This document shows positions 5,056 to 49,754 of a DNA stretch of 64,000 bases, piece after piece; position 1 is the first letter of the stretch; every line of letters starts with the position of its first letter. Both the position numbers and the translations under genes were made by a program. The notes under the pieces were generated by a model. That model saw nothing but the letters and a program-made list of their open reading frames with translations, was not told the DNA's origin and did no database searches. The stretch lies in NCBI GenBank assembly GCA_963924565.1, contig OZ004614.1, positions 21,824,001-21,888,000 of the forward strand. Reading direction: 5' to 3'. This DNA is from Ascidiella aspersa. Lineage: Eukaryota.

Positions 5056-7196
5056 TCAGGCCACAGACGTGTTCATTGTACTGAGTGACATGGCCACTGA
5101 ACTCGTGCTAGGAATGCAGGTGAGACGCAGACGCCGCCGCCAGTCGTGGTAGGCGTAGATAACACACGATGCTCCCACGAAGACGTTGATATCGTATACG
5201 GTGGCCACCCAGATGACGACCTCCCTTTCAAGCAGAAACGATGCAACGATGGCGCCCACGTCTGTGATGATGATAATAGTGAGTGAAATCAGGGTTCGCT
5301 TCATCACCAGGTGGATTTGCTTGCCGGCGCGCATGCGGTTGTCAGTCTTGGGCAGTCTCTTCAGGAAAGGGTAGAGCAGCATGGCGACGAGCGCAGGTTG
5401 AAAAAGCACGGTGAAGATGAGGCCGCTCAGAGCGCGCGTCGACTGTGAAATCGTGCCTTGATCCGCGAAGAGACATCCCCTTGGACTTGGCTCTAAGTAC
5501 GGTCCGATGACACTTAGACACCAGATGATTAGGAAGGTGGTGGCCATGGCTCCCATGAGGACTTTGCTGAGGCGCATTCGCAGCTTGCGTCCGGGCAAAC
5601 TGGCCAGCGCTTTGTTGTCCTGCACCGCATCCTGTCGCAGCCAGAGGATCAGCATGTTGGCGACCAGATTTCCTCCGTAGCCGCACATAAGCATGATGCC
5701 GTACGCCATGCACGCCGGCTGGCTTACGCTGCCCAGGAACAGATCGATTTCGTTAGTGAGAGTCAGGAAGACGGCGCAGCCACAGGAGAAGATGGTCAGG
5801 CGGCTCAACCTAAACGCGAAGAATGCAGTTACACATTTATCAGTGATTAGAAGCTTTTGTCCAGGTAATAGCTACTGTTGTGCGAACAGCTTTGCTAAAA
5901 TAAGCGTGTACCGACTGGGGTATGGAATCAGCACGAATCGCCATTCGGTTGGCCCTGTTTTTGTACATAAAAGCACAACTGTCTATTGTTTGGACGTAAG
6001 CAAATAGAGCATTTGGTTAGTTTCAGAGAACAACCTTTGAAAGTAGGAATTTACAATTACCGCTAAAAATAGGTGCGGTTAATGCAGCGATGCAACCTGA
6101 GATTGTTGTTGTGGTATAATGTTAAATTTTCTTGATCATAAAACGACTAAAAGCACTTAATACAAATATTTATTTCCTAACACTTTACTCGAATTTTAAA
6201 ACTTGTGTTTTACTTCCTATATAGAAATGGGTTACCCAGTACTATCGTGCTATGTACATTTGTTAAAAAGTATCGCGGTCCGGAGCATTATCTAGTTTAC
6301 TTATGCCACATCGATGAATTTACCTCTGAAAACCATAGCTAAAATAACTATATTATTTGGTATCGGAGCGGCACCGATACTACCCTTGATCGGACGACTA
6401 TACCGAATACTTGGATCGTGTATCGGCTCCGATCCGCTATTATCGGACATCCCTATATGCTACACTAAATTGATGTTGTCCAAAGTTGCGATTGCTCGGT
6501 TGCTTCATGACAAACCAGTCGAAAACAAATCGCTTAAGACAAGCTCCACCATTGGTTCCCAAACTTTTTTATTCCGTGGCCCAATTTTTTTTCCAAAACT
6601 GATCGTGGCCCATTGCTTTTTTCCACCTCTATTGATGACTAGTTTATATTGATTAACAAAGGTTTTTTTAATATTACAAGGATTTTATTCGTTGATACCA
6701 CTTGTCTAACAACAATCGGAGCTTTGATAAGTTTCCGATCTGTCGAAGTTAAACAACTCGCACGCGCACAGTTTTCGCAGTCACAAGATATTTTAGATAT
6801 GCATACAACTATATTTTAGTAAGACAAAATGTGTAGTTGTAATGTTTTCATATAGCTCTATGTCCCACTTAAAATAGTCTCATGGCCCACTTGGCCCACA
6901 GTTTAGGAATCGCTGACCTCAGACGAGATCAACACTTACCAGTATTTGCGTCTCTCTCTCTTGGCTCTTCCAGTTTTCACGCGAGCCTTCTGTCGAATGG
7001 TGGTCGAGTCGGAAAAACTTGCGTTGTTGGTGGAAGCCCGGACTTTCTTGGGAGTCTTGCCGAACTCGAACAACAGCAGGCACACCAGCATGTAGACCTC
7101 GATGACCAGCAATACACAGGTGTAGGTTTGGTGAAAGATCCATTGCCAGGAGTCGTACAGCGGCTCTGCACTGACAAACGTTGTCGTGTTGTTCAT
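5056..7196 (-). CDS. Orphan divergent 7TM (GPCR-like) receptor, paralog 1; 2 exons, 336 aa
   Basis: complement(join(5056..5809,6940..7196)). Donor TG|GTAAGT and acceptor TTTAG|G give a phase-2 intron, and the frame closes at 1011 nt. N-terminal sequon MNNTT, seven hydrophobic segments, Cys at the top of TM3 and in ECL2 (PRGC), LWLRQ at the end of TM3, YDIN in TM7 and a DWRRRL helix 8. Confidence 0.88.
6550..6915. mobile_element. Degenerate hAT-type MITE in the intron of receptor 1
   Basis: Ends CATTGGTTCCCAAAC ... GTTTAGGAATCGCTG (imperfect TIR) with GGCCCA subterminal motifs. TSD not preserved. Confidence 0.55.
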
Positions 7197-10100
7197 GTCC
7201 TTGTTTGAATGGAAGTCCCACGTAAAGAAAACGCTCAATCCTCCTTCAGTGAGCTTTCAAGTTGAATTTAAATACAAACAGCTGCGGTCTTTAGCTTTTA
7301 CGTCAGCCTTAGAAAATGCTGCAAAATGTGAAGCGTACGTGTCTTCAAACAAAGGGAAAAGTGTCTAAAAAGAGTTCAAGATCAAACATACGACAAACAT
7401 TCACCAGAATATATGATCAAACCTGTTTCACGAAAAGTTGGTTCACACTAAAAGTCAAAGTCGATTGGTATTGCACACCAAACAAACTAGACTCTTCTAA
7501 TATACATTACACTTTTACTTAAAACTATCCATTTGCTCAGCTCACCGACCTACTGATCAGCCTAATTTGATCTGACACACGACGTTGTTTGAATAAGAGC
7601 CCCGCATTGCATTGCGAACCTGTCAATAGCAGTGCGAGTTAAACATCACCTTATTTCATTACGGTCAATTTTTTGCTGCCTAAGTAAAAATTCTTTCGAC
7701 TCACTTCTGTCGTCATGTAAACACCCTAATGGCTTAATGGTTTAATGGCGAACTGTCGGCATCGTTTACTACAGTTTGTGCGCATCTTAATAGAAACGCA
7801 TTTTCTCCTGTTTCAGTGAGATATTCCTGGAAAATAATTTTATGTGCGCACGTCAGATGTTTTCGAAATCCTACTCTTGTCCGCAGGTGTATAGTATTTT
7901 TAAACGATGTAAGTAAGATGAGAAGTGGCGCATAAACAAAAATATCAGAATCATTTTTTTTCAATTTAAATACTATTATCATTTATTATTCAAACTTTTC
8001 TAATTTTCACAAGTTGTTTAAGATGATATAATCGCTTATGCGCATACAAGAATAAAAAATATAATCGTTGTTAAGTCTTTCTTTTCATTGTAATTTCTTG
8101 CTTTTCACAAGTCCGTCTGAATTGTTCTCACAGTAAATTTTAATTAATTCGTAATGCGTTCTCTATTCCTATTGCGGATTGTATACCATCTCTATAGCGG
8201 TCCAAACCTAATCTCGTTTTCTTTCTGCCGGCTAACAGCCGTTCATTGCGGCTTCTTACAGCTTATTTAGCCCATCACCAGTATAAACACGATTTCGCTT
8301 CTCGCAGGTTTACATCGAGCAAAGCAGCAAGCAGGCCGGCGTCTTAAATGCACTATAGAAAACTGTTTATAACCAGGCATTACTTGTAGTGGCAAGAGTC
8401 GTGCCTTCCGTTACTTCACGCAACCGGACGCTCTCATGGCGTATCATCGAACGATTTTTGCTGACTTTTGCGTCACCCGAAGGTCGGAAATTTCCGCACA
8501 GCATGTAAAAACGGCTGGAGCGACGCTTTTACAGCGATGCGTAAGAGCGGCTTTTCTCATCCGTCGCTGTCTGCATGTCGTCGTCGAAAAAAACCGAGCC
8601 GCCGGTGCCAATTTATTTATCGTTCGTTCATGGACGTGGTCACGCCTCTGCAATTTCATCCGACCGACCGCGCGATGACGAAAAATTTAGTTTATGTCGG
8701 TACTTGAGGCGAAATCGCATTTTCCGCTGGCGGCTGGTTTGCGACGTTCGGCTACTTAAGGTAAATTAAACCCGAGAAGGGGTGTATAGCCTCTGGGTAG
8801 AAACTACAGATAGGAATATGCATCGATAGAATCCGAAAAGCAAAGCAAGTGTTGCACTAAAACTCGTGCACACCGAACACAGGAGCCAGCACTTTAAGTA
8901 AACAATAAATTAAATCCTCGCACAACCTCAAAGAACCAATTTTAAATCCGCTTTAATTGTACTGTAGCAAAAAAAACAAAAGTAACTTCATAAAATGCAA
9001 CCTCGATATTTTAATATATTTAAAACAAACACCGTCTAGCACTATCTTTCAAACATTTAACTAATAAAGCAACAATAATACGAAAAAGTAAATATGTAAA
9101 CTAAAACCCTTATTTGATTACCCTAGCGATGTTTCTAATTATTTCTTATACGTACCGCTGCAATTCGTTACAATTCAAAATTCTAACCAATTTTTTTTAA
9201 ATATATTATTTAGCGACGTTAGAAAACCAAACGCTGTATAACCAATCTTAATCTCGTCGTCATTAACCTTTACCGCCCACAATGCTCTGAACAGCTTTAA
9301 AGATCCCAAGAATGTTGTAGTGCGTACATTGCAGCCAAATTGCCCACGGGCCTCGTCACGACATATCGAAAACGCTCAAACGGGATGACGTCACCATTTA
9401 TAATGATGCCAAATGATTTTTTGGCGCGGTATGGCGGTTTCATACATCCGCCCTTTCTTATAAGGATTGCCAAGTTTGTAAGCAAAATTTTTCAGTTTGA
9501 AAACTGAAACCCGTAAGTATTTAAATATGGCCGAAAATCTATTGCGAAATGGCATTGGCGACATGGTTTTTTCAGCAAAGGTTTCAATTGTCGCGCTGTC
9601 CTGTTTGTTTAAATATTAATAAAATTTTCTATAGTCACACACTACTTAAAAAATATTTTGTTTATTAGCCTAAATTGTTCTCCGCGTATGAACATCACAC
9701 AAAATCACAACAATATTTACTACAAAATCTAAAAACTAGCAGTAGCTATATGTTACCATGAAGTCTATACAAAAATAAACACCTATAAACTTAAAATATT
9801 TTTTTTCTGTTAGCTCGTTCAATGCCTGGCATTTAACAATGTTGTAATCGAGTTATTTATTTGGAAATTACTTAAATCACATTTAAGTCATTAGTAAAAT
9901 AAATCAAGTCTAAGGTCCAAGTCTTTTTAAATAAATAACAAGGCAAGTTCCAGTCAAGTCACAATTATAGCAAGTCAATTCCGAGTCCAGTCCTGGTCAT
10001 TAATTAAACTTTAACTAGCGCTTGGAAGGTTGCCAGGTTAGCCGCGGTCAAAAAAAAAAAAATATATATTTTAATTGTATAAAACATGTTACATATTTTT

Positions 10101-10204
10101 TACTTTTCTATTCGTCTTAGCTTATTGATTCTACAGTAGTTTCAAGCTATGCAACTTTGACTGTAGTGAAAATATGTCAGCAATTCAGGGGAATATATCT
10201 AGAA

Positions 10205-10535
10205 CAGGGGTGGGCAACTTACGGCCCGCGGGCCATATCCGGCCCGCCAACGCAAATCATCCGGCCCACGACCTATTTTAGAAACTGGGCACGGAGCGAT
10301 ATCTCATATTTTCTAGCTATTTCAACTACGGAAAAGCAAATATTTCTATGCGCTTTGCGTTAATCTTATTCTCCCATCGAGTGTAAATTGCAAAATACCC
10401 TAGTTTTATTCCTGATTAACTGACGTTGCGATGACATTAAGATGCGTAAAGTATACATAGCTATCATGTAACGGCCCGCGGAGACCTTTTTTAGTTTGAT
10501 TTTGGCCCGCGACTGGAAAAAGTTGCCCACCCCTG
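10205..10535. mobile_element. hAT-type MITE
   Basis: Perfect 16-bp TIR CAGGGGTGGGCAACTT; TSD ATCTAGAA/ATTTAGAA; GGCCCG subterminal repeats. Confidence 0.9.
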
Positions 10536-11596
10536 ATTTAGAACTATACCCAAAAACTTCGCGCCCGCTTCGCTCGCCAGGTGCTTTATAAATGTCTCTA
10601 GCTGCGCCTTGAAGTAAGAACAAAGGTTAAGTAACACTGCTTGCAAGTATTAATATTAAGTCCGATTGTGAGCAATAAACCAAGAAAGAATAATCCTAAA
10701 CGTAAAATATATATAAAGCAAGCAAATAGTTTGCATAAAACTTAAGATAAAAAATTGCCTAATGCAACTACTTCATTTCAACACAAGTCATTTGTCCAAA
10801 AGTCTGGAGTTAAGTCAAGTGATTTGAAGCTAAATTAAGTCATTACAGCACTGTTAAGATTAAATATTGAATTGATCCATCAATATTAAATTAACCATTC
10901 TAGGTACGGCACTATGCAAACCAAATAGGCCTAAAAATCATTTTCTTAACTATTCTTCACTAAATACAGCAAACAAACAAAAGAGATAAAGGTAAAGAGA
11001 GCGTTAATTTAATTAGGCTTATCTAAATATCTTTAATTCTTTATGTTTTCCTGTCAGTGCGGCAATATGGCTTGTCGTTAACACCCCTTCAGTCCTTCAC
11101 GTTGTCTGTAAAATCCAATGGTCGAATTTGATTGACCTGCTTTTTCTGGGAAGCTTCAATCAACAGTGACACCTGTGAGACAAAATACAGCAAAAAAGGG
11201 TTATTAAAACGTCTTGTTGCGATTTCTATGAAAAGCACACATATACTTGAATTGTGAGCCAATTTGTAACGATCGAACGCAAAATAGGAAACAACCAAAA
11301 TCGAAACATGACCATCGACAGGAAATCAAGACTCGTGACGAGTGCATGAAACAAGAAATGGTTCGTTTAAACTTTAATTGGATATTCGAATTAAATGGTA
11401 ATTCGAATAAGAAGATTAGTTTAACGGTATAGGTGTTACATTGCAGTAAATTTGTAGTTATAGGTATATTGTAAACAGCGTTGCCGTACTTTCCCAATTC
11501 TACAGACATTCATGTTTAACGAAAGCACAATAATATTAAATCAGTAACACACCCATATATATATATGTCGAATTGTCAACGATCGGTCGGTTAAGA

Positions 11597-11854
11597 CAGT
11601 GCTTTTTAAACTTTGTTAAATTTGTTCACCCCTATAGCATCTATCTATCATATTTCATTCAACCTTGTCTCATGATATGATTTTGGAAATTTTCACCTGT
11701 TCACTGAACAGGTTAACACCCAGAATATCCGCCCTGCTCGCAAGCTGTCATCTATTTCTGAAGGTACATCCCTATTCACCCCTTTTGGTTGGTTCACCCC
11801 TGCAAAAATTTTATTCACCCTGGGGTGAAACCTTTACCTGATTAAGAAAAACTG
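11597..11854. mobile_element. hAT-type MITE
   Basis: CAGTGCTTTTTAA ... TTAAGAAAAACTG; perfect TSD GGTTAAGA; TTCACCCC subterminal repeats. Confidence 0.85.
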
Positions 11855-12596
11855 GGTTAAGATATTCGCGCTTCAAGTGATTAGCGGAAGATGTTTATGC
11901 GGCGGTACGGCTAATTCCAAATAGTTATGACATGAGAGAACATAATAGACTAAATAAGACCTTTCTGGGTATAGTACGATTGACGGCTCAAGCAAATATG
12001 TTTATTCGATATGTTTCAGATACACAATGTTTCGGTTACATGAATAAATTGCCACTGCCAGACATTGCATCAATAATAAAATTGTTCTTCCGGCAATATT
12101 TTTATTAAATTTACCAACGTTTTGATAATCTATACTAGAAGTATTCCTCAGTGCAATGATGCTGCAACTATAGGAGAAAAACTGCAAAATATATGTTTAT
12201 CCCAGTTTCAATATTATTGCTCTGATGAAGATTTTCAGTAGAGTTTGAAAAAAAATATTGACGAAAGAACAACTTTGAAAGAAGATTTTGGTTAGTTACA
12301 TGTTAAATTGCCACAATCGTTTTTATATTGCATTCATCTCCTATAACACGCGGCTTCAGCAAACTTACACAAGGATGGGACATTAGAATGTCACAACTTG
12401 ATCGTTTTTATCAACACATGAACTATTCTAGCGTCTTTCACATATATAATTACATAAGTTTAGGCTGATCATTGTGTCCTAAAGAAAGCGCTTTTGGAAG
12501 CTATGCATTACAAACGGGTAAAGTGTTTACCCTACGTTGGGGAAGGGTTCTTTATAGCAGATAACGATTTTGCACTCGAATTGCTTATTTAGAATG

Positions 12597-13010
12597 TTAG
12601 TACGTCAGTTGATTGAATGCCGCTTCCAAAGCTCTTGTTCTACGGCTGGGGCGTAAAAAAGAGCTAGGGAAGATATGCTGATATGCGGAGGATGTACGCG
12701 CTTGCTCCCACGTCGTATCATCCAGCCTTCTAACAAGTGCAGACCGTGATATTAGTTTGCTGCGCATGGTTTTAAGGTATCGGCGTAACGTGAGTGTCCT
12801 GTCCAGATGTACGCCGAGGTTGATAGGCTCGATATTAACGTCCAAGTTCTTTAATTGGGATGGAGAGACAGTTTACGTTTCAGCAACGCCTTCTTTGTTG
12901 TTAAGGTGGACTGCAGCCGGTACCGTTTTTTGATTATCTAAGCTTTAGTCTCACTCCGCGGAGGCCTCGCTGTTTTTGAGTCCTTGTCATCCCACGTAAG
13001 GTTCCTTCAG
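12597..13010 (-). mobile_element. Decayed non-LTR retrotransposon (LINE, Ingi/I-like) reverse-transcriptase C-terminal fragment
   Basis: Minus-strand peptides KTVPAAVHLNNKE and NLGVHLDRTLTLRRYLKTMRSKLISRSALVRRL..TTW resemble the YLGVxLDRTL thumb region of LINE RTs. Frameshifted. Confidence 0.75.
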
Positions 13011-13064
13011 ACATTGAACTATAAGTATCTTATGTTTAGCCAAGGCGCAAATATTCCAATACTT

Positions 13065-13377
13065 CAGTGGTTCTCAACCGGGATGCCGCGTCACCCTGTA
13101 GTGCCCTTTCTAATTGCTCAAGGGCACCGAGCAATATTTGAGAATCTTAAAGAATCTGATTTTCACTCAACTGTTACAACTGTTTGTGTACAATTAGAGT
13201 GGAAAAAATTCAACTTTACTTTCCTATAATACATGGTGTAGAGTTGATGTGTGTTGTTCCAGTTCCGTATATTGTGCCATTATGGTAAATTACTTGACGA
13301 AAATTCTTATAGGGGTGCAGCAATTTATTTATTATTGCTGAGGGGTACCGCAAGCCATAACAGGCTGAGTAACATTG
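13065..13377. mobile_element. hAT-type MITE (older)
   Basis: CAGTGGTTCTCAACC ... GGCTGAGTAACATTG; TSD CAATACTT/CAATATTA. Confidence 0.7.
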
Positions 13378-14201
13378 CAATATTATTATGTACAGGGCTG
13401 GCCGAACCGCTGCTCGCGAGTCTCATGTGGCTCCGTTTTAGTTCAGGTTGTATTAGATTTGCAATTAGTTTCGCTCTTACTTGTTTACTTGTGTTTAACT
13501 TTTCGCGTTTCGAAAAATCTTGTCAGCATAAACACGCCTTGCGTGTTATGGCATATTGCTAACATCTATGGGAGCGAAGAGTTATGTCTCCCTATACCTG
13601 GAATTCTATCTATGCTTAATTTTCATTGCGAAGTCCTGTGTGAATAAAAGTTCACTAAAATTATAGCATATACGCAAGTGTGCAAAATCTATAATCAATC
13701 TATAACTGAGCAAAGGTTTAAGCGTTTCAAGGTGTGGCTCTTTGCAGTTAACCAAGTAAGAAATATGTATCTTGGTCTCTGACTAGTTGTAAAAGCTATA
13801 TTTCAAGTTTAGTTTTTCCACGCTGCTGCTAAACCAATTTATTGGATAAGTGTTTTTGTAGAGTCCATATTGCTTGTGAAAATCTATCACGTAATTTTGC
13901 CAAATTTTGACTTCATTCGGCTTTCAGCGCTTTCAAACTTTAACGCAACACATTTTGTTTGTATTTTTACCTGACTTTTGAACACGACAATTAATATAGG
14001 TGGCTTATGAAACGAAAGTTACAAACTAATAACGTCTTACCCATGACATGACCAGGGGCGGATCCAAGATTTTAGTTTGAAGGAAGGACATGAAAAGCGG
14101 AAGGTCATAAAAAGTTTCAAAGATGACAGGTCAATTATTCTTTCACTACAACTGATACGGCTGCTTAAACAACCCGGATCCATATTATACGCCCTGTACA
14201 G

Positions 14202-15016
14202 CAGTGTTTCCCAAACTTTTTTTCTCGCGTACCATTTTGAGCTTTTGTACAGTGTTCATGTACCACCTAAGTTACATCTGACTAGAATATCTCAAACTAT
14301 ACCTATTTTAGCATATAGATAAGAAAATGAGCATGTAGCTGTATTAGAGTTTAACAACTATCATTCCAGGAAGACTTAAAAGCCATAAATTAAGCAAAAC
14401 ACAGCAAATAGTTTTAATGCGATGGATGTAGTTGTTTTTTTCGCGACCAGCTGGTTGAGATGTCGTCTGGAGTATGCTTGGTTTCATAGCTGAATTAGCA
14501 AGCGCCTTCATACAAACAACATATTGCGGAACAGCTTCTCTATTGTGTTCAATAGCTATAAACCCGTAGTTTATGTAGCCTAAGTCTGGCTGTACTTTCG
14601 TTTAGACATGTTCCTAGTATAGTTAAATTAAACAAAATTAAATTCTTACACTATTCCTCTATTTTAAAAGAAATTACAGTAGTTCAATATGATTGAAATA
14701 TCATTATACATATGGCAATACTACACTTCTGCTCTTCAGTTTATTACTACTTACGTATTAAACCAGCCAAAAATTAACGTTTTATTATCTTCAACAAGCT
14801 AAGTGTTACGTCATAAACGTGCGAAACCTCAAATTAAAGGCAATTAAAACGCAACATTGCAAATACCCAATCTGAAAGTTTTGAAAGTTGAAAGTTTTCG
14901 CAAGTTTATACATATATGCTTTAAAAAGTTTTCGCAGATTTATACGTAGTCGCGTACCACCTGAAAGACTCTCGCGTACCACCGGTGGTACGCGTACCAC
15001 AGTTTGGGAACCACTG
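14202..15016. mobile_element. Non-autonomous hAT element
   Basis: TIR CAGTGTTTCCCAAAC / GTTTGGGAACCACTG; perfect TSD CTGTACAG; CGCGTACC subterminal repeats. Confidence 0.92.
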
Positions 15017-16292
15017 CTGTACAGAGTAGCCTACCCTTCCATTTTTGAAATAAATTTACTGTAATTAAAAGTTATGATTCATTTTCTTTCGCGTTGCATT
15101 TTCCTGGGCTTCTGCTGAGATTTGTTGATCTCGTTATTTCGAACAATTCGACTGCTTTGGTAACTTAGGGGATTGCTTCACTACGCATGGCTACACATCG
15201 GAAAACCGCTAACGATGTATATTTTTCTTTTGCAAAACTAAACATGGATATTGGCCTACAAAAGCCGTCCAAGCTAATAGCTAATGTTGGCAAGCTGTTA
15301 GTTTTCGAAATGCAGCTTTCAATTTTTAGTTACTTAAATGGGTGAGATATATAGGCTGTAGAGTCGGTGCCGGCACTCGGGACCAGAAGTCAATGACAAT
15401 TTGGCCGCAGTCGAACTCGATTTCCCTTGGCCAAAGTCACACGAGGTATAGTCGGACTCGGGTTGTTTTTAACCGACTAAAATTTCATAAGAAAATGCGT
15501 ATGAATTTAATTGGCTAAATAAAGCTTTAAAAGCAATGATTTTTGCTGCACTTACTCGACCACGTTTTTATCCATAAAACACACCACTTGGGAAAGACAT
15601 GCAAGCCCGTTCCTGATTTGCAATTACCTTAAGCTGCGTAAAACTAAATGAGCGTTAGAATTACCCTAAACTAGTAGCCTACCATGGTGCCTATATAAAT
15701 GTTTCTGTAGGAATAGTGTGGATATCAAATCCAAAACGTCTTCAAATGTAGAATGCATCGATCCATGCTTAGGCGTTTCAACTATGTTTGCTGTAAAAAC
15801 AAGTTAATGGGTTGAGGGCACTGGGAAATGCTAGTGATTCACGTTGAACGAAATTGGTATTTCGCAGAATTAAACCGCGCAATTCTGTTTTAAGCCTCAC
15901 CAGAGAGTTTCAGTGTTTACCCTGACGTACGTAAAAGGGTAGGGTGCCATTGGCCCATGCTTGCGCGGGTGACACCGCTTGTAAACTTTATTACCATTGT
16001 TTTAACCAACCTTTACAAAACGTAAATACCCGCTTCCGCTGACTTTGACAAATAACTCCTTCAGTAGGTGCTGAACATCGACTATTAAATACTGTGTTTT
16101 TATTAAGCATACAGCAGGTTAGTCTCATACAAACAGCAGGTTATTACGGCGTGTTTTTATTTAATGCTCATAAGCTAAAAAAGTATAGCGGCTGTCGACC
16201 TGTGACTTTCATAAATTTCCAAATTGTGTCCTTGTTTTTCTGAGGGCGTGAAAAGGTTCCCAGCGCTTGTTTGACCAAAATGCGTGAATCGG

Positions 16293-17242
16293 CAGTGTTG
16301 TAATGATTTCATGAAGTGTGCAACCTTGTCTTGCACATAGGGACCAAACAAGGGTATCCGAATTGGGCCTTACAGCAAAACGCATTTCTTAGCGATCAGA
16401 TTCACTTGAACCGAAGAGCTGTCAATCTAACGCCAATTCGCCAGGTGTTCATTATAGTCAGTACTGACCGCTGACTGGGTTAGGTGAACCATGCTGGAAT
16501 GAAACCTCGCCCATGATACGGTAAACAAAATTAAACTAATGTCAACTTTACAGCCACTGGAGTTGCTAAGACCAGTTACTGAAGCTATTTCAACTGAGCA
16601 AGCGCATACCAAACAGAGTAATCATGTGGCATTACCATATTTAGAATTAGAAAAATACGACCATTTACGAAGATATCAAACTGAATTAATGCTGTTATTC
16701 TCGGTAGATTTGTGACAAATTGACCAAGCAACAAACACGTTATATTTAGAAGTTCCATTAAACTTTTTGTCCGAGTATTTTATCACGGGCCGGAAAATGA
16801 AGCTTGCAACCACGTATTTTCATATTGGGTGCTGGGTTTGACCCAACCCTGACTTGAGTCAATATGCACTTCAGTCAATAATTTTTTCAATTGAATTAAC
16901 CCAAGTTTAGAGGCATAATGACTTAACTTGGGCTTATTTAAGCAAATAAACGCTTTTATGAAATATTTTTTCCGATAATTTCCCTTTCCCTTCATAAACG
17001 TAGCATTTCCCTTTCTTTGCAAAGTATATCATTTACTCTGCGAAATGTCAGTCGTAATAGATTAGGGTTATTTATTTCAAAAGCTCGCAGTTTATAGTTT
17101 GGCTTTACTTATTTTTGACAAATAGTTGCACAAGAACTGGGCTTGCTATTTATTGAAAAGACTTCCTTAGACTTTGATTTGTTTCTCAATTCACTCGTCT
17201 TGACATTTTGATTTATTACAAAAGAACTTGTTTAGAACACTG
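16293..17242. mobile_element. Old DNA-transposon remnant with GACTT(G) subterminal repeats; related pieces at about 9837-10853 and 43989-44392
   Basis: CAGTGTTGTAATGA ... TAGAACACTG ends with dispersed GACTTG/CAAGTC motifs. TSD is weak. Confidence 0.45.
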
Positions 17243-35814: not shown

Positions 35815-38241
35815 GTTGGGTGTCGAAGATACTTCTCGGTACTTTTGTTGTGAAATTAAATCGCTTTATCGCCAAGTATACAATATTAAAACAATTTTGT
35901 ACGCGTTTTGCTAGTCCGTAGAACTCTGTATGCAAAGACAGGTCTCTTGTGAAATAACTAGCAATCAAAAGTTATGTGTAAACCGCAATAGTTAGACAGG
36001 CAAACAAACGTTGGCAGTAAATATATAAACTTATTTGTGGGCAAAACATTTCGCTAAACTTCTCTTAGCGTACCTGTATTGCTACCAAGCAAAATGCATT
36101 TAGTAGATGCAATATTAAAAAAGCAATCGTCGCGACCTAATGCTAAAATTAAAATTTGGATAACGCCAAGTAAATTATCTTCCAATCTTCTGTTTACCAG
36201 TTATTCACAAATCCAAACAATAATAAAAGAGCAACTTATAGTAACCTATATTGGCTTCATTAGTTCCGGCAAGCAACAAAACCACTAAAACTTAATAAGG
36301 TGTCGTATAAAATAAATTGGCAATATCACTTAACGATTTCGGTAAAGTTCTATCAAACGACTGTTTAGCAGACATCAGAAACTAAATGCAGTTGTCAGTT
36401 GTGCGTTTATATGTGCAACATTGCGCCTCTTCCGACGTTTGACAGATAACGCCCGACTCTGCAGTCACGGGCTTGTTGATGCTAAAAGAGTGACCCACAG
36501 AGGATTTGTCGCCTCTCAGAAAATCCCTGCGCTCGGCAAACTGAAAATGCCAATTTTAAACACTCTAGCCATGAGTAATACTAATATTCAGATGGTATAT
36601 TTGGAAAATTTGAAAAGGTTGCGGACTGACTTTCGCAGCATTGTCACAATTGGGGTTAAATCTAGAAGGCAATCTGTCACTTACTAAACTATATATAGAA
36701 AGTTAAAGCAATAGCTCAGTAATTTACGCGGCTTCTGATTAACGCGGTATTCACCAGCAGTCGGTGAAAGTTAACAATTTATTGTTTAAAATATTACCTG
36801 ACAACTTTTGACCGAACAAGCATTGTAGATATATAACCGGTTGCTACCAGGCATGGTAATATAAATCAAAAGCAGCTCCTCTGGTAAGCATTGTAGATAT
36901 AGGACGCATCAAAGTTTAGTAATGACAGTCTATAGTGGTGCTACGTGCTAGTTTCGATGGTCTCGTGGGTAACAAACGTGGGCACAAGCATGTGATCATT
37001 CGTAACAGTATATAGCATTTAATTTTAAGATTTTGTATATGAATATAGCATTATTAAGCACGCACGCTTCAGATTTACGTGCCTGAATTTTCAATCAGGG
37101 AAAGCACTTCCTGAATAATTTACATACATTAAAAGGTGATCGCTTTATTGCAGGGGCTCTTAAACATTTTTTTAACGCGGACGCCCTAAAAGAATTAGGG
37201 ATTCTTAGAGATTACGTTATAAAACCAGTAATCGTTAGAAACATACTGTTTAGGGTCAAACAACTGTAAAGCTGAAAATAATTCTTAATATATTTGAAGA
37301 GAAAGCTGAAAAAGCGTTTTTGTTTCAATTAAACACTTATATACATTCATATTTCTAATTGAGCACCACAATTTCAATTAGGCCGATAAAGGGTCCATGG
37401 CAACGACATCATATTGCAATGAATCTCTAGAAGCTCTCGGGAGTCGGACAACTTGCGAGGTCACCCGGACTTTCAGTGACGCAGCTGCACAAGCAAAGAC
37501 GTCACGAGTCGCTACGGTTGTGCAGGGGAAGTCGGCAACCAGCGGCGGCAATCGGGTTTTTCGTCGCCAGCGATTGAACCCGAACCTGGGCGTGGCGGAA
37601 TTTTCGGGAAAGCCAGAAATCGCGCCCAGAAAATTTCCCTCGCCCTCGACGCCGTCGCGTTTTGTCGAAATCGAAATGTCGCAGGCGCGCGAACAAGTCG
37701 TCATCCGGAGTTCGTTTTTGTCAAAACAGCGTTTCGATTTGCGCCCCCTGAAACGTGATATGTGTTGAGCCTTGATTGTCAAACACTGTGCTTCGCTAGC
37801 TTTTAACCCCTCCACGCCCTTAAAAAGGCTGTCGAACTTGCGACGAACCTAGCAATAGGAATTCTAATACTTTTTAGCTTCTGATTTGTGTGTGTATAAA
37901 AACTCACACCAAATGTAACCTCTCTTACCACAAACAACTTATTAAGTGTTACGTGTGGTCTTGCAAAGAGTTTTGCTTGTAGGCACAGCGTTATAAGCTT
38001 TCAAAGAAACAAAAATTGATTTTATTCAAGAATTGTGAATTGACGTCTTAGCTTGTTAGGCATTAATTATGCAGTTGCACGCCTACATCGCGCTGCAAAC
38101 ATCATATTTACTCGCATTTCTTTCGTGATAAATGTAAACACGAGTTTTGATAAAAGTCATTTTACTGACTGACATTTTTTCAGGACGATCACCTTTAATC
38201 GTATATTTACATTTTGACTGCCACCTTAGCTTTTCGATCCT

Positions 38242-38273
38242 TATATATATATATATATATATATACATATATA
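38242..38273. repeat. (TA)n microsatellite
   Basis: Direct reading. Confidence 0.9.
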
Positions 38274-41198
38274 GCCAATGCATATACCCTATATATTATA
38301 AACAAGTGCCTACAATATATACGCACTAATATAACTAACTTTTCCCGACTTAATTGCCGCACACCAAAGTAAATCGGAACTGAGTAATGTGATTGTTAAA
38401 TCAATCAACTGGTATATAGTTGTCCTATGATAAGTTCAAACTCACACGCCAGGAATGATAATACAGTATCTAAAAGCATTTGTTTGCTGCAATTGAGTTT
38501 AGTTTCCAAACGGAAATATTGTCTGACCCCTTGGAAAAGTAAAACGACGCACCAAGGGCCAGGGCGTCGTGACGCACAGTTTAAGTAGGCCTACCCCTAA
38601 TTTGATAGACAGCTGTGGCAGCAAACGTTACAGACGTGTGCTTGTCACCAGGTCACCGTGACCTTTGCGGCGAGACCAAAAAACACGTGGTATTAAGTAT
38701 TAGCAATTTTCTATTTTTATCGACGCGAAAAATACAGGCGATCTCTTGATATCTTTAAAATCGGTATTATTGGTTTGTGGAATTTTTAATATTGTCTTAT
38801 GAGATCCAATGTAGCTTTTCTATTTTAAAAAGTAGATTTTGAGAAAATAAACAAATTATTTTAACTAAGCTTACTAACTCTAAATTAAATTTTGGCTCCT
38901 TAACCTTTCCCATATACGACTACGACTAAATTTTGCGACATTTCCAAGTGACGAAAATAAGGAAAGATACACACAAATACGGGTTCGACGACTGTGATCT
39001 ACAGTGGTCCCAGTACGGCCGGAGGTCGTGAGTTCGAACCTCACTGCAGCCTATAGTCGTGTTTCTAACCTGCCTCGCTTGCATCACTGATCGACCGGTG
39101 GCTAGTATGTGATGGTTTCGATAGATGTCGTAATGTTGTATTGGATAATAGGACGGTATTTTTGGCTCAAAATGTCGGGTATCAGTTTTAAAATAGATTG
39201 CAGTGTTCGGACTTCAGTGACCATTCGGGCTGTTGATCATCGCGGTAACGCAATCAACTAACAAACACCGCCATGTCGTTGTTTTTAGTTATTTCCCAAA
39301 TGCTAGCGGCGCGGTTTGCTCAATACATAACGAGGGACTTTCTTGTTATGACGCGTTTCCCAAGCAGTACATGCTTATAGAATCACCTCCCATATAATAT
39401 CACCTGCGCCCTGTATCCTCTGAGAACCAGCAATGATAAAGAGGCAGGAAATCCGATTACGCGAAATGTTTCCTTGCTGATTTCGTGCTTACAAACGTGA
39501 ACTGCTTTTTCGTTGCAACGGCACGATTTGTTACAATCATGTACCAGGATGCTTTTGCAGCAGCAACAGCAATGTTTCAAAGGTATAGGGCCCCACCTAG
39601 TTGAATTATTCGCGCCGTTAGTCGATTGTGCTACCCTGTTTAGGGCACAGCTACAATGTATAGCGCTTTTTTTTTCTTTTTTTTCTATAGTTAGAATTCA
39701 TACCCCTCTTTGTTGACTGAATAACATATTCGGTTTCCTTTAAATCCTTGTTTGTCTTTCACAATTGGTTAATGTATTTTTCCTAAACAATTTTTTTTTT
39801 GTATCTTTATTTGGTACTTTCTTACTAATTGTATACTACTTTGGTGAAACTTGTTTTCAATAAAAAAAATGGCGGAACAAGCCAAAGAGGCACAGCTGAA
39901 TAACAATAACTAAAAAAGAAAGAAAACCATTCAAAAAAGAACAAAAAGACGTTGGAATATCCTTATTACTTTGCAAAATTATATCTTACAACTTTCCCTA
40001 GAGCAAACAAAAATATTACTAATAATAACTGAATAAAATAAGTTATCTGCTAATAATTGCCTGATTCAATAAAATCCAACAGTCTTTTTTTTTCCATCGT
40101 TGGGTTTGTTTGGGCGGTAAACGCTTGAATAACCATACCCTAACCCTAAACACTAATCGATTATAAAGCAAACCACCACTACAAACAAATATGGAAAATG
40201 ATTCTCAGGCCCTTCCTCTGGGTTCGCATATAATGTAATAATGTAACGTGTTCAAAAGTACACAACTATACCAACTTTGATCAGAATTCTAGACCTACTT
40301 TTTAGCCTGTGACTTTTAGCCATGAGGAACCAACGCCACAATCATTACCTTCGTTGCCTGTTTCGTTACTACTTCTGTTACTTTCCAAAAAAAATGTAGA
40401 AAACACAAAACAAAGCAAAAAATTACTAAGCAAATATGCAACAGAAGACAATTTAATTAGCCCCAAAAGAAAGCTTGGTACAATGTCTGTTATCCAAATT
40501 TTGGGAAAAACAGAGATGCGCTGGCCTGAGTCATTGTTACGTCAGAGCGCGGCCCATTGTCCGCCTGGATGCGCGTCTTCGTGATTCGGAAGGGAGATTG
40601 CGCAATCGGGCGATTTGGCGCAAAAAGTTGGAGGTCTTATCGCACAATGTTTTCATGATTTTGTTTGGTGCATTTGAAAGCAAAGCACAATGAGAAGCGC
40701 TAAAAAAGATAAAAATGAGTTTTTTTGGGACTCCTATTCTTTCAACCTTTTGCAGTAGCTACGGACCTTATGAAGCATCGCTTACATGAAACTGGCTCTC
40801 GCCTAGGTAACTTGTAACGGTGGTTGCCGAGCGTTGCGAAAATAAAAAAAACTAAATAACTTGTACTCTTGTGGTTTGTCGCTCATTAAAAATAACGTAT
40901 TTGGTTATCGTCATTCGTTGTCGTAAAGTGTTTAAGCCTACTGGAATAAGGTAAAAATTACGTTTACTAAAACGAAAATATCGCCAAGAGTCACTTGGTG
41001 TCAGTAGTAGGTAGGAAACATAAAACTACGCATATCACGTCTGGATTTCATTCGTGAACAACTGAACATACAACGCAAGTTTTTTTAATTTTGCTAAATG
41101 AGTATTTAAGGTTAGAACCGAATCATCACTGCATCAAATTAAGCTTATATTGGTATATAATAAGCTAAATTATAAATTTGAAACGGAAACCATGAAAC

Positions 41199-41693
41199 CA
41201 GACTTGGATATCTAGATTTATTTCAGCTTTTTAAAATTAGTTTAAAACTAAAATTAGAGCATTACAGTTTTTCTAAATTAGATTAGAATTAGAATTACAT
41301 CATTTTAGTTTCAAATTACTGAAATTAGACTAAAATAAAAATTACGAAATTCTTGAAAACCAGTTATTAAACAAGAATTTGAAATCGAATTGCATTTCAC
41401 TATCCAGACTCAATTTAGTTTAAATCGCATGTATTCTTTGAAGAATGTGAATCGTAAATGTTTGTGTGGTAATTTTTAAACGTTTTAGCACAGATTATTT
41501 ATTCAAATTCTTTGTTTTGATTGAGAGAATCAAATTGCCGTTGGACAAGGTAGAATTTTTCGTAAAATCCGAATTAGATTAGAACTAGAATTAGGGCACA
41601 CAAGCAATTCACAAATTTGATTAGAATTGTAAAATTTATTGTGCTCTAATTTAACGAATTACAAAACTAGAATTATCTGGTTTTCCAAGACTA
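41199..41693. mobile_element. MITE with TTAGAA-rich interior (copy 1)
   Basis: Colinear with 46855-47317 over about 480 bp (shared GCCGTTGGACAA and AAATCCGAATTAGA). Begins CAGACTTGGA. Confidence 0.75.
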
Positions 41694-43604
41694 CTGGAAG
41701 TTGTACAAAAGTTTCCCTGCCAACTTTTTCAGGACAAATTAGGATGAATAAGGCGCGCCGTCGTATTCACAGGACTACATCATTTGGAATAAAGAATGTC
41801 GCGGTTTGTCGCATGAGCGATTTTGTTTATTGGAAAAAAGGAGTTTTACCTCACGCGGACCATATAGAAAACTTTACAAAAGAGAAACAACTTTTAAATA
41901 TAGCCTTCTGTCCCAAGGCCGGAAAAATTGTGTTTATTTCGAAAGCCCAAGATGATATTTTTACTTTCAATCTTATAATATCCTTGAACACTACTTGAAG
42001 AAAGCAAGATTGGCGCTTTAAATAGGCGCATAGGATTTTTGTTGCCAGTGTGCCAAACCAAAGTGAGTCAAAATAGAATTGATCGTCTGAGAAGCAAATA
42101 AACAACTTTTTCTAGAAGCGCGCATTACCTCAGGCGCAGGCAGTCAAAACAGCGTCACACTAAAGGTGCGGCCGGGTAATCTTGCGGTTACTGCAACTTA
42201 CAATTGGCCTTTTCGACGCTTTAAAATGCGTCGATTTTTTCAGCAATGCCACTAGGTTGGCCAAAATTAGAAATTAAACTGTTTTTCGGTGCCAGTGATT
42301 GGCGGCCTGGGAAGAGACGAATTTCCTGTAAGGTTCTTGGTGTAGAAAAGAAAGCATTTGATGAACCGGCGGAAGTGTTTGTCAGGTTATTTGCGTCGCG
42401 ATACAACCGACACGAATATCAAAGAGGCAAACAAAATTCAGACGTGACTCGAATGCTGCACCGAGGCAGGTGTTTTAGGGGTTACAAGGCAGGAAGTCAA
42501 ATCACGGTCGTTGGTGGTTGAATATAACGACACAGCGTTTAGGAAGCGCACGATGATTTTGGCTAATGAACCGCGCAATTAAAAAGGGCACAACAAAACG
42601 CCACCCTTGCTTTCTGATGTGACATGCCAAATCATCTAATGTGATTTGAGAAGATAAGTTAAGTTAAAATTGAAACTGCGATATGCTAAAAAGACGATGA
42701 TTTTTTGAGCTAATCTTGTTGACTTATTTTGTTATTTCATAAGAATGGCTATGTGAACGATGTATACTCCTTCAATAGAAACATTGAACAGTTTAATACC
42801 AAGAAAAGGACTTTTACCGATCAATGTTACTCTTTGCTGTTTTAGGTTTTATAATTTCAATTATCTTGCAAGTTTGGAGCGAATATTTAACTTGCGGATA
42901 TTTTCAAGTTTTAGTAGAAAGTTACCGTGACCCTGCCGCCGATTTATTTGCTGTAATAGAGTTTAATTGGTGGGCTAAAACGTTCCAGTTTTGGTTGACA
43001 GCATATGAATAATATATACGATGAAATCAATCCATCCAGTTTAAACGAGATAGATTGTGTCAGAAACAAGGTACTTTACAAGTACTAAAGACAGGTTCGT
43101 CAATAAATTACTTTAAGTGCTGTCCAATACCAGTATTTTGTACAATTACTAAAGTTTAAGACAAATTGCAAATGGGGATACAATTGTTCATCAAGTCGTT
43201 GACATTAAAATACAAGTTTCTGCGAAATGAAAAAAACTTATGCAATACTAAATAACATTCCACAAGCCAAACACCAAAAATAAAACATAAAACAGGAAAG
43301 CTGTTTTAAGAGTAAACGTTTTTTGAGGAAATGAGAAATCTAGTTAAAACCTATTAAATGACGAGTCAAGCTTACCTAATTAAAGTTGAAGGTACGACGA
43401 TTTGTCGGTAATGTCAACCAACATATCCAATTGCACCTCTTAATTTTATTCACAGTTTTGTTTTTATCATTGGTGAAAAATTTTATTTAAAAAAATGATC
43501 CTACATGTTTTAGGTGAAAACGTTTTGCTTGGGCTTGTCTTTAAGTTTTTTCAGTAAGTAGGCAACGCTGCTGTTCAACAGTCACCGCATTCAGCAGCCG
43601 CAAA

Positions 43605-46600
43605 ATGCCAAGAAGCCAAGAGCTAGTCAACGCTACAGCAACGTCAGATTTCTGGAGAAACGCTAGCGCAGCCGAGGTGGTCGTGAACACCAACAGCACG
43701 CAAATCGAAGTGCTGCAACCCAAGTACAACTCGTGGCAATGGATCGCGACGCAGATTTTGGTTTGGCTCCTCGCCAGCGTCGAGCTGTACATGCTGGTCT
43801 GTCTGCTTCTCTACGAACGAAACTTCCTCAACAAAGAGCCAAGACGGTCGTCCGGCGCCGCCGAGAGCCAGCTGTCGGATTCGAACCCAAGCCGGAAAGT
43901 TGCCGCCCGACGCTGCAAGGCAGACAAGTCGCAGACCACCAAAGTCTGGTGAGTATTCCGTTGAGATTGACAAACCTTGGCAACTTACCATTGTTTTAAT
44001 GACTTAAGTTACTGCTGTTAAACAACTTCCCTTGACCTAATTCGTTTAGGTAAAATGACTTAATGCGACTTAAGGCTGATGGACAAAGGACTTGGCTTGG
44101 ACTTAAGTCATTGAGTCAAATGACTTGGGTTAAAATTAAGTCTATTTATTTAACAATTAGTTGAAAAATTGAGGTATTTATCTATCGTTGCACGTAAAAC
44201 AATCAGATTGCTACAGGTTGTTTTTTCATAGTTTTTAGTGGACATATTGCTCAAAATCGGACGAGTTTACCAATTTTAAAGGTTTATCGTTTTATTTTGA
44301 TAACAGTGATTTGTCTTGTTTATGCTTGTTCTAATAATGACTTGAGTTGAATGGGACCTGGACTTTGTTTTCAAACTTGTTTACAATTACTGTAAGTGGC
44401 CGTTTGAGGTTTGAGTAAATGCAGCACTGCATTATAAGGTAACGTAAAACGAAAATTTGACGTATTGAATTCCTTCAATGAAATAGCTTAAAACAGTAGA
44501 AATAAAAAATCATACTGCATTAAAATTCGCAGATTACTGTGTTGCATGTTTTCAAAAGCGCGTTTTTTAGCGTATCTCGTTCGAAAACAAAATATCTTGT
44601 TCAAAACAAAGATATGACGGGATTTTAATCGGGGTTTCCCTGTATACCTATTTAAATCTTATTAAACCAGACCGGCAACAAATAAGCAATTTTGTTTGCC
44701 TATCATCTATAAAAAAGACTAGTTTGCCGAAAGCTATAAAACGTGACGTTTATTGGTTTAAAAAAATGCAATAGCATGACAAGTCCAAGCTCGTTTCAAC
44801 AGAGTTTTTTGTGTCGCTTGTCCTAAAACTTACATTTCAAATATAAATTAATATTTCGTCGCCAAGGACACAAATTTTATGGCAAGACACCAATTTACAA
44901 GCAGTAAATAAAACAAAACGCACGTGATTAAATCAGGCGTAAATCGTGACGTTCTGCAAGCAAATATGTATTGACACACACAAGGGCATATTCTTATTGA
45001 AGCTCGATAGAAAACGTTTTAAAATCGACTTAAACGGCAGGCACCGTACTTTTTTCATTATCTATCGCTTTAGTTATGGCAGAGTTTTCCAACCTGGTTG
45101 GAATTTCGAAGTTTCAAGTGGGGAATTTGAAATTTGACCAAACACGCACATTTAGTTGGGGGTGAAATATATTAATACGAGGAAGGAGCAGACCTCCCCT
45201 TCGAAATATAAATATATGTTTTTCGCAAGTAAGACAGCACTTTAAATGAAGTGTACATGATCCTTATTATTGCGTCACAATGTGATCTCTGTACTGTAGT
45301 ATTTACTACGACTGCATATTTATAATGATTTATGTGGTTACATCGATAATATCAACTTTTCTTTGAAAAAAATATCAGCAAACTAGACTAACAATTTGAT
45401 ACTTATATAGCGGCTGAAAAGCGTGTAATTGTTAAGCTGTGTTATACTCTCTTCGTTCATTGACAAATTTACAGGTGCCGTTTTGCTTTTGGTTAATACA
45501 GTTTTAAATAGCGATTTAAGAGTCCAAGGGATAAGAAACGTTGAGAACCACAAATGTATGGTTCCCGGGTTTGTATGAATAGCTTTTTCACCGAAACAAA
45601 GTAAATAATTAGCAAATATCGTCAATCGTCATTTGGTGCGCAGGATACGGCGTCTCACCATTCTCGCCTGCGCCAGCGCCCTGCTCAAATGTCTCAGCAA
45701 CGAAATAGACCTTTTCCTGGGAACAAGGAGCCAAACCGCCTGTCAGGTGTTCGGAGTCATCGCAGTCTGCGGCTACGGCGGTTCGCTCTTCTTCGTAATG
45801 TTGATCCTCTGGCTGCGCCAGTCGGCTGTTCAGAATCACAAGGCGCTTACTGGCCTGCCCGGAAAAAGAATCCGGATTTTTTGCAGCAGGTAAAACATGC
45901 GCTGTGTGTTTGATGGTCGACAGAGGCCTCGTATTGGCCTTTATTTTCATATAGTTTATTTGCCTGTTTGAAATCCCTGTGTTTTTTTATTAATGTTTAC
46001 AGTTCTTTGAAGCCTTGTGTCACCCCTCCATTGCACGAAAGTTTGTCATTTTTGTGTGTCAGCTGTCTACAGTAGACCTTGATGATTTACGGACCGCAGG
46101 TCAGGCCTGACTGCCAAGTTGAATCCGGCCTGTAGCTCATTATTCTTCCACAAAATCTTTTAAGCGATAATGAGAATTTACCTTTCTTTTCTTGATTTTA
46201 AAACATTTTATTGAATAAACTACTCTTGTAAGGAATCTTTACCTGGCCTTACCTTATAAAAGTTTGTAAAACCAAGAATATTTTCGGCTTGCATTTAAAA
46301 TCAATCAGCCTTTATGTTATGTGTGTTTTAGATACCCCTTTAAACCGACCCTTTTTGAACATTGTCTGTTTTTATGCGACTCTCTGCCCAAAAATAATTG
46401 CCCACCCATGGTTTATATCACTAGTTCTTAACCTTTTTCTTGGCACGCCCCTTTTATAACTGTTCTTTTTCCCCGCCAGACAATTATAAAGTGTCACAAC
46501 CACAACACAAACCTTTTTTTAAGGTTTGGTTTGGGTGACCGCTAAGTAGCTTTAAGAGACCGCAAGTGTTTCATTTAAATACCAAAAAGTTGCAAGTCCA

Positions 46601-47901
46601 AAGTTTGGGAAACGCCTGGAGAAATTTGGGGGACCGTTTCGGTCCCCAAAAACACCTTAAAAAAACACTGGTCACAACAAAAGCAATTTTGTATTTGTCG
46701 GTTATATATCAGTAAGGCATCTTACTATACCAAACTATTACTTACACATTAATTGCTCGTACACAAATTGCTCGTGGTCAATAATGATCTTTTATTGTAT
46801 CGAGATTATTTTTTGTCTTTCATCAAATTGTGCTCGGGAATTTGACCATGCAGTCAGACTTGGACAACCAGAAATTATATTAGAATTAAAATTAGAGCAT
46901 TTTAGTTTTCCACATAATATTAGAATTACCGAATTCCTACAAAATAAAATTTCAACTATAGAGTTTGAACTAGAATCACATTTAATTATTTACAATCATT
47001 TTGATTTAATCGCAATTTATTCTTATGAGAACGTGAATGGTAGATATGTGTGTGCTAATTTTTATGCCTAATCTTTTAGTTTGTAAAAATTACATACAAG
47101 TCGTTCAAACCAAAGAGTTTTAACTAAAATTCTGTGTTTGAACTGAGATACTAAAAACGCCGTTGGACAAAGTAGCATTTTGGCAAAATCCGAATTAGAC
47201 TAGAACTAGAATTAGAGAAAACAAGCAATTCACAAATTAGATTAGAATTAGAATTAGTAGAATTTTGCTCTAATTCACTGAATTAGAAAACTAGAATTAG
47301 CTAGTTGTCCAAGTCTGCTTACAGCTGTAGACTGAGTGCAGAGCTGCGCCAAAAAACACGTAAAAACTCCACTACTTTCTGCTCCCGCAGGTTTCTCCTG
47401 GCGCTCATGCTTCTCTTGTTCGGCGTGCTCTTCGCGCTCAACTTCGCCACCATGCGGCTCAAACCGGGACCATGGGGTTGCTTGTTCGACGACCTGGGTG
47501 AGCTCTCGCAGTCGGCACGATCCAGTAGCGGCCTTATCTTCACCGCGGTTTTCCAGCCCGCCTTTGCCGCCCTACTTCTCTATCCCTTCCTAAAGAAACT
47601 GCCGAAGACCGACGACCGTCGTTTGCCAGCGGTGAAGCGCGTGCGCCTTGTGATCAAGCGTACTCTCATCTCGCTGGCTGTGATCGTTGCCTCGGATGTC
47701 TGCTCGATCGTGGCTTCCTTTTACATGGAGGCGATGCCTGTGGTGTGGCTGGCCGCCGTCTACGACCTGAATGCCTTCGTTGGTGTCGTCTCGCTTGTCT
47801 GCTCCTATCAGGACTGGAGGCGTCGCATGCGTCTTGACAGGCTGCGCACGCCCGCCTCGCTCAGCAAAGACGCCAGCAGCGCACCCCCGGCCAGCATGTG
47901 A
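43605..47901 (+). CDS. Orphan divergent 7TM receptor, paralog 5 (inverted); 3 exons, 366 aa
   Basis: join(43605..43948,45644..45889,47391..47901). Junctions TG|GTGAGT...GCGCAG|G and AG|GTAAAA...CCGCAG|G, 1101 nt in frame. Longer N-terminus with three N-x-S/T sequons. Motifs VELY, NEID, LWLRQ, PWGC, FQP, YDLN and DWRRRM. Confidence 0.87.
46855..47317. mobile_element. MITE with TTAGAA-rich interior (copy 2), in intron 2 of receptor 5
   Basis: Perfect 14-bp TIR CAGACTTGGACAAC / GTTGTCCAAGTCTG. Confidence 0.85.
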
Positions 47902-49702: not shown

Positions 49703-49754
49703 GACTATAGGAAAGTCCAATTATATCGAGAGTCGACACTCGACACCCGATACG

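Follow-up and report, generated by a model that had tools for sequence, protein, structure and literature searches.

A tandem gene cluster in Ascidiella aspersa encodes members of a tunicate family of orphan seven-helix proteins with a predicted G-protein-coupled receptor fold

The stretch of DNA analyzed here, referred to as the window, comprises 64,000 nucleotides of the genome of Ascidiella aspersa (assembly GCA_963924565.1, contig OZ004614.1, positions 21,824,001 to 21,888,000 of the forward strand) and holds a tandem cluster of genes for orphan seven-helix proteins. A tblastn search with the exon translations, together with a listing of the open reading frames (ORFs) in all six frames, yielded exactly five copies that are related to each other, designated g1 to g5. 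Their exons, numbered from the first base of the window, are listed below; TM1 to TM7 stand for the transmembrane helices and ICL1 and ICL2 for the first and second intracellular loops.

7196-6940, minus strand: g1 exon 1, with the ATG, the glycosylated N-terminus, a YDSWQW motif, TM1 and the basic ICL1, ending in ...TG/GTAAGT (phase 2)
5809-5056, minus strand: g1 exon 2, with TM2-TM7, helix 8, the tail and the stop codon (g1 in total 336 amino acids)
21021-20762, minus strand: g2 exon 1, with the N-terminus, TM1 and ICL1
19266-18501, minus strand: g2 exon 2, from TM2 to helix 8, with the stop codon (g2 in total 341 amino acids); AlphaFold predicted local distance difference test (pLDDT) score 90.2
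29325-29069, minus strand: g3 exon 1, the first exon of this gene
28328-27587, minus strand: g3 exon 2, stop codon included (g3 in total 332 amino acids), with a non-basic helix 8 (DWQNVI)
35814-35552, minus strand: g4 exon 1, with the splice donor TG/GTGGGT
34486-33718, minus strand: g4 exon 2, with the motifs LWIRQ and YDVN and the stop codon (g4 in total 343 amino acids)
43605-43948, plus strand: g5 exon 1, with a longer N-terminus carrying three sequons, TM1 and ICL1
45644-45889, plus strand: g5 exon 2, with TM2, TM3 and ICL2, followed by an extra phase-2 intron
47391-47901, plus strand: g5 exon 3, from TM4 to helix 8, with the stop codon (g5 in total 366 amino acids)

The splice sites, as read off the sequence, are GT-AG for all introns and all introns are in phase 2. 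The first intron of each gene splits a TG/G or TG/C codon at the end of the long basic ICL1. The summed exon lengths (1011, 1026, 999, 1032 and 1101 nt for g1 to g5, respectively) are each divisible by three and the exons of g1-g5 are free of internal stops. The full-length proteins of Ciona (P0001, 344 amino acids) and Phallusia (P0003, 333 amino acids) align through the junction of exons 1 and 2, which validates the splice model. Searches, structure predictions and trees were run on single exons or on such natural full-length orthologues, and the exons of g1-g5 were kept separate. The initial annotation of the window, made from the letters alone, had described five stop-free, spliceable paralogs of 332-366 amino acids, and both the lengths and the closed frames proved exact. 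It had also described a tandem cluster of five. The five copies are indeed there, but a sixth, g0, lies just upstream (C8:21822621-21823973, minus strand), with its ATG 27 bp before the first base of the window, and g5 is on the opposite strand from the others. The genes g1-g4 have two exons on the minus strand, whereas g5, which faces g4 head to head on the plus strand, has three exons and one more intron. In g0 an intron of only about 320 nt separates two exons, and exon 2 is 70% identical to that of g1. In all, the six genes g0-g5 lie within about 49 kb.

The cluster consists of old duplicates under purifying selection and is unlike a fast birth-and-death array. Pairwise dN/dS over exon 2 ranged from 0.22 to 0.45, with a dS of at least 1.0 even in the closest pairs (g0/g1 and g2/g3, both 70% identical); g5 was omitted from this calculation and from the conservation analysis described further on. 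A tblastn search of the whole window uncovered no pseudogene fragments between g1 and g5. The earlier description of these genes as rapidly diverging is therefore at odds with the dS and dN/dS values. The same values bear on the question whether the copies might be decaying or never expressed, and intact by chance. We consider this very improbable, since six copies are open over 332-366 codons in two to three exons with canonical splice sites, with the substitution rates given above, and since orthologues are annotated in both Ciona and Phallusia.

A protein search with the window genes retrieved three relatives at 46-50% identity, including the Ciona protein 'uncharacterized LOC101242726' and its Phallusia namesake, and a search of the same genome retrieved about 30 far more distant loci, mostly with a single exon. 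The initial annotation had proposed the family as a candidate lineage-specific one and had suggested a count by hidden Markov model (HMM). With a profile of the superfamily, at least 120 matching loci were counted in the A. aspersa genome, many of them in tandem arrays, and 1,335 clusters at 50% identity among 1.84 billion proteins in public data (560 at E <=1e-30), of which the best 150 were inspected. The named proteins in the approximately 35 clusters that were looked up are all ascidian (Ciona, Phallusia, Clavelina and Styela), in agreement with the proposed lineage restriction. The neighbours in the ESM Atlas are described as 'commonest Chordata' and carry no Pfam family. The mostly single-exon arrays of the superfamily are located at C5:21.87-22.04 Mb, C6:24.1-25.2 Mb and C3:31.04-31.10 Mb, with further arrays at C4:27.94-27.97 Mb and C2:16.56-16.59 Mb; some of the array members are interrupted by a single stop and are probably pseudogenes.

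In a maximum-likelihood tree, in which g5 was represented by exon 3 alone, g0-g5 group together (Shimodaira-Hasegawa-like approximate likelihood ratio test 83), with the Phallusia protein as sister and then LOC101242726 of Ciona. The clade as a whole has 100% support and a long stem. On the basis of this grouping, g0-g5 are lineage-specific duplicates that are co-orthologous to single genes elsewhere, and Ciona and Phallusia indeed have one clade member each. When an HMM was built from the window clade alone, it identified the Ciona protein P0022 (LOC100177193) at E 6.8e-13 (Z set to 1e6) and the same-genome loci L027, L019 and L014 at 5e-14 to 1e-9, and matched none of 30 ORFs for class A G-protein-coupled receptors (GPCRs) of the same genome. 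P0022 and L027 are 47% identical.

The family to which the cluster belongs is not new; it was noted in Ciona in 2020 and is uncharacterised. In that work the gene KH.C3.516 was described as an orphan seven-helix gene that has tandem neighbours and an 'unresolved phylogeny' (Johnson, Razy-Krajka & Stolfi 2020, EvoDevo 11:15, PMC7397655). Its expression is specific to the axial columnar cells of the papilla, and a fusion of the protein to green fluorescent protein (GFP) is concentrated at the apical tip of these cells, which is exposed (PMC7397655). The same authors proposed, from Ciona, that the family could represent the missing smell and taste receptors of tunicates, and listed a neurotransmitter of neighbouring neurons as one possibility for the ligand of KH.C3.516 (PMC7397655). 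In later papers the gene serves only as a marker. The initial annotation called the family uncharacterised, which still applies, but the family had not escaped attention. It is a Pfam-orphan without a sequence match in the PDB.

A comparison by eye of KH.C3.516 and KH.C3.722 (supplement of PMC7397655) with the superfamily of the cluster revealed the same motifs: a Cys at the top of TM3, LW(V/L)RQ..Y, a GC in the second extracellular loop (ECL2), P(I/V)V(R/Q)H where TM5 ends, an R...D in TM6 and, within helix 8, SF.DY..RL. P0022 likewise has the diagnostic stretches in common with KH.C3.516 and KH.C3.722 by eye, whereas the link that is scored by sequence is the match of the window-clade HMM to P0022. 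Both the KH.C3.516 family and the window genes are tandemly arrayed and, so far as named proteins go, found only in tunicates. The window genes differ in that they form a separate long-stemmed clade, in which a phase-2 intron in ICL1 is conserved, ICL1 itself is basic and much longer, TM7 has YDxN and the N-terminus has YSSWxW. Most other superfamily members have a single exon.

The encoded proteins have one to three N-glycosylation sequons before TM1 (g1-g5), in keeping with the short glycosylated N-terminus that had been described. Seven transmembrane helices are indicated by the AlphaFold models and by hydropathy combined with a count of positive charges: 19-24 Lys and Arg residues are on the predicted inner side versus 1-6 outside. 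Following the positive-inside rule, this excess supports a topology with the N-terminus outside. The Cys at the top of TM3 and the Cys of the (P)xGC motif in ECL2, both pointed out in the initial annotation, turned out to be conserved superfamily-wide. They correspond to C120 and C199 of P0001, invariant in an alignment of 23 sequences, and an alignment of 125 sequences shows C34 without variation and C113 with a conservation of at least 90%. In both alignments W..RQ is invariant or nearly so. Within the cluster, TM3 ends in LW(L/I)RQ, TM7 contains YD(I/L/V)N and helix 8 reads (Y/F)xDWRxR. The last motif agrees with the W-containing basic helix 8 described earlier, except in g3, where the corresponding DWQNVI is not basic. 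The ICL1 of the clade spans about 35-45 amino acids and is rich in Lys and Arg and poorly conserved (exon 1 of g1-g5; residues about 45-75 of P0001), and a clade-specific YSSWxW motif immediately precedes TM1. Both the long basic ICL1 and this motif are unusual among GPCRs.

The predicted structures are confident and GPCR-like. AlphaFold2 modelled Ciona P0001 from a 23-row alignment with a pLDDT of 86.9 and a predicted template modelling score of 0.86; the model has seven transmembrane helices, a beta-hairpin in ECL2 and a helix 8, and TM1 and TM2 are extended as a cytoplasmic hairpin. Exon 2 of g2 (TM2 to helix 8), modelled from 125 rows, reached a pLDDT of 90.2. A Foldseek search with the full-length P0001 model returned class A GPCRs only (50 of the top 50, best E 2e-4), and in the 3Di ranking for the g2 exon-2 model they made up 49 of 50 (best E 3.9e-3). 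The class A matches have E-values of 2e-4 to 1e-2 and a TM-score of only 0.4-0.6. The combination of AlphaFold and Foldseek, which the initial annotation had put forward as a check on its seven-helix receptors, produced the seven helices and the class A neighbours. In addition, an automatic UniRef label on two Clavelina members reads 'GPCR family 1 profile' (PROSITE). With class A receptors, for example those of the chemoattractant, opioid and GPR55/GPR35 types, the cluster proteins have in common a bundle of seven helices and an outside N-terminus, both as predicted, the Cys pair between TM3 and ECL2, the ECL2 hairpin, helix 8 and the Arg with which TM3 reaches the cytoplasmic side.

At the level of sequence the cluster proteins differ from class A. 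A Pfam search, including PF00001 (7tm_1), gave no match for any exon of the window, for the Ciona and Phallusia orthologues or for 10 distant paralogs, and among 125 relatives 2 had weak 7tm_1 matches (best E 2.5e-4), none of them above the cut-off. Against the complete set of PDB sequences, a profile produced chance matches only (a methyltransferase and syndecan). We read the models as a GPCR fold that may derive from class A, although the proteins fail the sequence criteria of that class.

The folds, the topology and the intact gene structures, taken together, present g1-g5 as real, functional-looking receptor genes with a predicted GPCR fold, and as new members of the family noted in Ciona. 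We consider it probable that the six tandem genes, five of them inside the window, are intact paralogs within a single clade of tunicate orphan seven-helix proteins, related to KH.C3.516, and that they encode surface receptors of GPCR fold that signal to G proteins. Such a receptor would reside at the cell surface with its short glycosylated N-terminus predicted to be outside. The conserved Cys-Cys pair would probably link the beta-hairpin of ECL2 to the upper end of helix 3, the long basic ICL1 would be built in part from helices 1 and 2, which extend into the cytoplasm, and a short amphipathic helix 8 would follow helix 7. A ligand would presumably bind in an outer-facing pocket, and the signal would be passed to heterotrimeric G proteins via a conserved inner face. 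To this face helix 3 would contribute the Arg of its terminal LW(L/I)RQ, helix 5 its terminal YP(L/F)LK, helix 6 the KR at its base and helix 8 its DWRxR.

Several observations weigh against this view. The proteins of the cluster lack GN, DRY, CWxP and NPxxY as well as N1.50 and D2.50, and hence have no class A microswitch; indeed, the initial annotation had correctly reported that GN, CWxP and NPxxY are missing, that LW(L/I)RQ replaces DRY and that YD(I/L/V)N replaces NPxxY. Their TM6 has no W-x-P and in fact no Pro at all. An hhalign comparison with class A receptors of the same genome, in which TM6, TM7 and helix 8 were in register, was marginal (P 0.002-0.02 versus 0.25-0.56 for reversed controls). 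Moreover, the coupling to G proteins is suggested by likeness only. In favour of it, a complex of the Ciona orthologue and an intronless G-alpha of the A. aspersa genome, as predicted by ESMFold2, had an ipSAE interaction score of 0.36 versus 0.00 for the best control, which was graded as 'weak support'. A pass of this kind is more often wrong than right, may reflect a memory of solved GPCR-G protein complexes and does not count as evidence of binding. The runs shared at least 61% of the contacts and the pLDDT of the partner was at least 73.

The missing class A switch motifs and the weak result of the complex prediction would fit seven-helix membrane proteins that act outside G-protein signalling, for instance as ligand-gated channels, in transport or scaffolding, or as light-sensitive proteins. 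We consider this improbable, because GPCRs are marked by just such an orientation of the N-terminus, Cys pair, ECL2 hairpin and helix 8, because the Foldseek matches at the top of both lists are, with one exception, class A GPCRs and because TM7 offers no Lys for retinal. The latter residue is absent from TM7 in g1-g4 and from the superfamily consensus, and on this ground a microbial rhodopsin was rejected. In a structure comparison the microbial (type I) rhodopsins, with a Z of 16-17, did match the seven-helix bundle as well or slightly better, but none was among the Foldseek top 50 of the full-length model, and the cluster proteins are set apart from them by the predicted ECL2 disulfide and hairpin, by helix 8 and by their animal lineage, in addition to the Lys.

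Given surface receptors that signal to G proteins as the preferred reading, the question is what they would sense. Chemoreceptor repertoires usually take the form of large families in tandem arrays. The superfamily is tandem, large and specific to its lineage, and most of its members lack introns, in line with environmental chemoreceptors that would be part of the missing olfactory and gustatory repertoire of tunicates, the role proposed for the family in Ciona (PMC7397655). The initial annotation had likewise suggested a chemosensory role, and as another possibility immune sensing, for which the data speak neither way. In fact, tunicates are devoid of OR, TAAR, V1R, V2R and T2R genes (PMC7776563; PMC2396169), and the location of KH.C3.516 at the exposed tip of papilla cells would suit such a role (PMC7397655). 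Divergent chemoreceptor GPCRs, such as vertebrate T2R and V1R and the serpentine receptors of nematodes, resemble the cluster proteins in having a short N-terminus, about 300-370 amino acids, few or no introns, tandem arrays, a restriction to a lineage and lost class A motifs. A sequence relationship to them is absent, and a Pfam search with 125 members gave no Srg match and one Srd match at E 0.003. One neighbour cluster in the ESM Atlas is labelled 'Serpentine receptor class gamma', but this label is automatic.

The A. aspersa genome contains six intronless, full-length G-alpha genes in tandem (C1:4766040-4782372, minus strand) and a seventh at C8:11045917-11046831 (plus strand). They encode 333-378 amino acids with MGCxxS-type N-termini and are 44-87% identical, and their extreme C-terminal, receptor-contacting tails all differ. 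Canonical multi-exon G-alpha genes are found elsewhere in the genome. The intronless array may represent a lineage-specific expansion of transducers that parallels the seven-helix superfamily, and the divergent tails likewise speak for environmental chemoreceptors.

Nevertheless, the window clade itself is free of signs of birth and death and of hypervariability at its outer face. The identity between paralogs is 0.56 in the outer half and 0.52 in the inner half, i.e. equal, and ECL2 is well conserved. These values, together with the age of the duplicates, the absence of pseudogenes from the cluster and the single clade member in Ciona and in Phallusia, argue against chemoreception specifically. 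As evidence on an odorant repertoire that evolves fast, we regard the old, constrained duplicates without a hypervariable outer face as neutral or slightly adverse. On balance, we see environmental chemoreception as possible but doubtful for these genes.

The same data are compatible with receptors for endogenous ligands (peptides, lipids, amines or metabolites) that act in signalling between cells. Purifying selection on old duplicates, the conservation between paralogs of ECL2 and the outer halves of the helices and the single orthologue in each of the other two species would all be in line with such a role, and peptide and lipid receptors are among the Foldseek neighbours. The neurotransmitter suggested as a ligand for KH.C3.516 (PMC7397655) would be of the same kind. 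On the other hand, the position of KH.C3.516 at a tip that is exposed to sea water is more difficult to reconcile with it (PMC7397655). The very large tandem superfamily also counts against it, and we know of no ligand family that has expanded in parallel. Receptors for endogenous ligands are, in our view, a serious possibility that still falls short of an even chance. An environmental cue as ligand is plausible, as it is for KH.C3.516, yet for the window clade it is no better supported than an endogenous ligand.

The window has some further features. Downstream of g5, at a distance of 6.5 kb, a single open frame of 804 amino acids (54453-56867, plus strand) encodes ankyrin repeats and an ion-transport domain, and thus a TRP-type channel. 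Two open frames of 195 and 145 amino acids (49424-50011, plus strand, and 37378-37815, minus strand) have no Pfam match and are probably not genes. An Rfam search of the window gave no match.

Tunicate larvae choose settlement sites, yet the chemoreceptor families of vertebrates, insects and nematodes are all missing from tunicates (PMC7776563, PMC2396169). The family noted in Ciona now has a confident GPCR-like structural model, a motif definition and estimates of its size (at least 120 loci in A. aspersa and, in public data, 1,335 clusters at 50% identity). To this family the window contributes a separate clade whose genes carry introns and that has one orthologue each in Ciona and Phallusia, and because LOC101242726 is the single Ciona orthologue of this clade, it offers a tractable entry point. 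It is conceivable, although we consider it rather unlikely, that the whole superfamily, including the g0-g5 clade, constitutes the chemoreceptor repertoire of tunicates: an independently evolved GPCR fold that would replace OR, TAAR, V1R and T2R and would signal via the intronless G-alpha paralogs.

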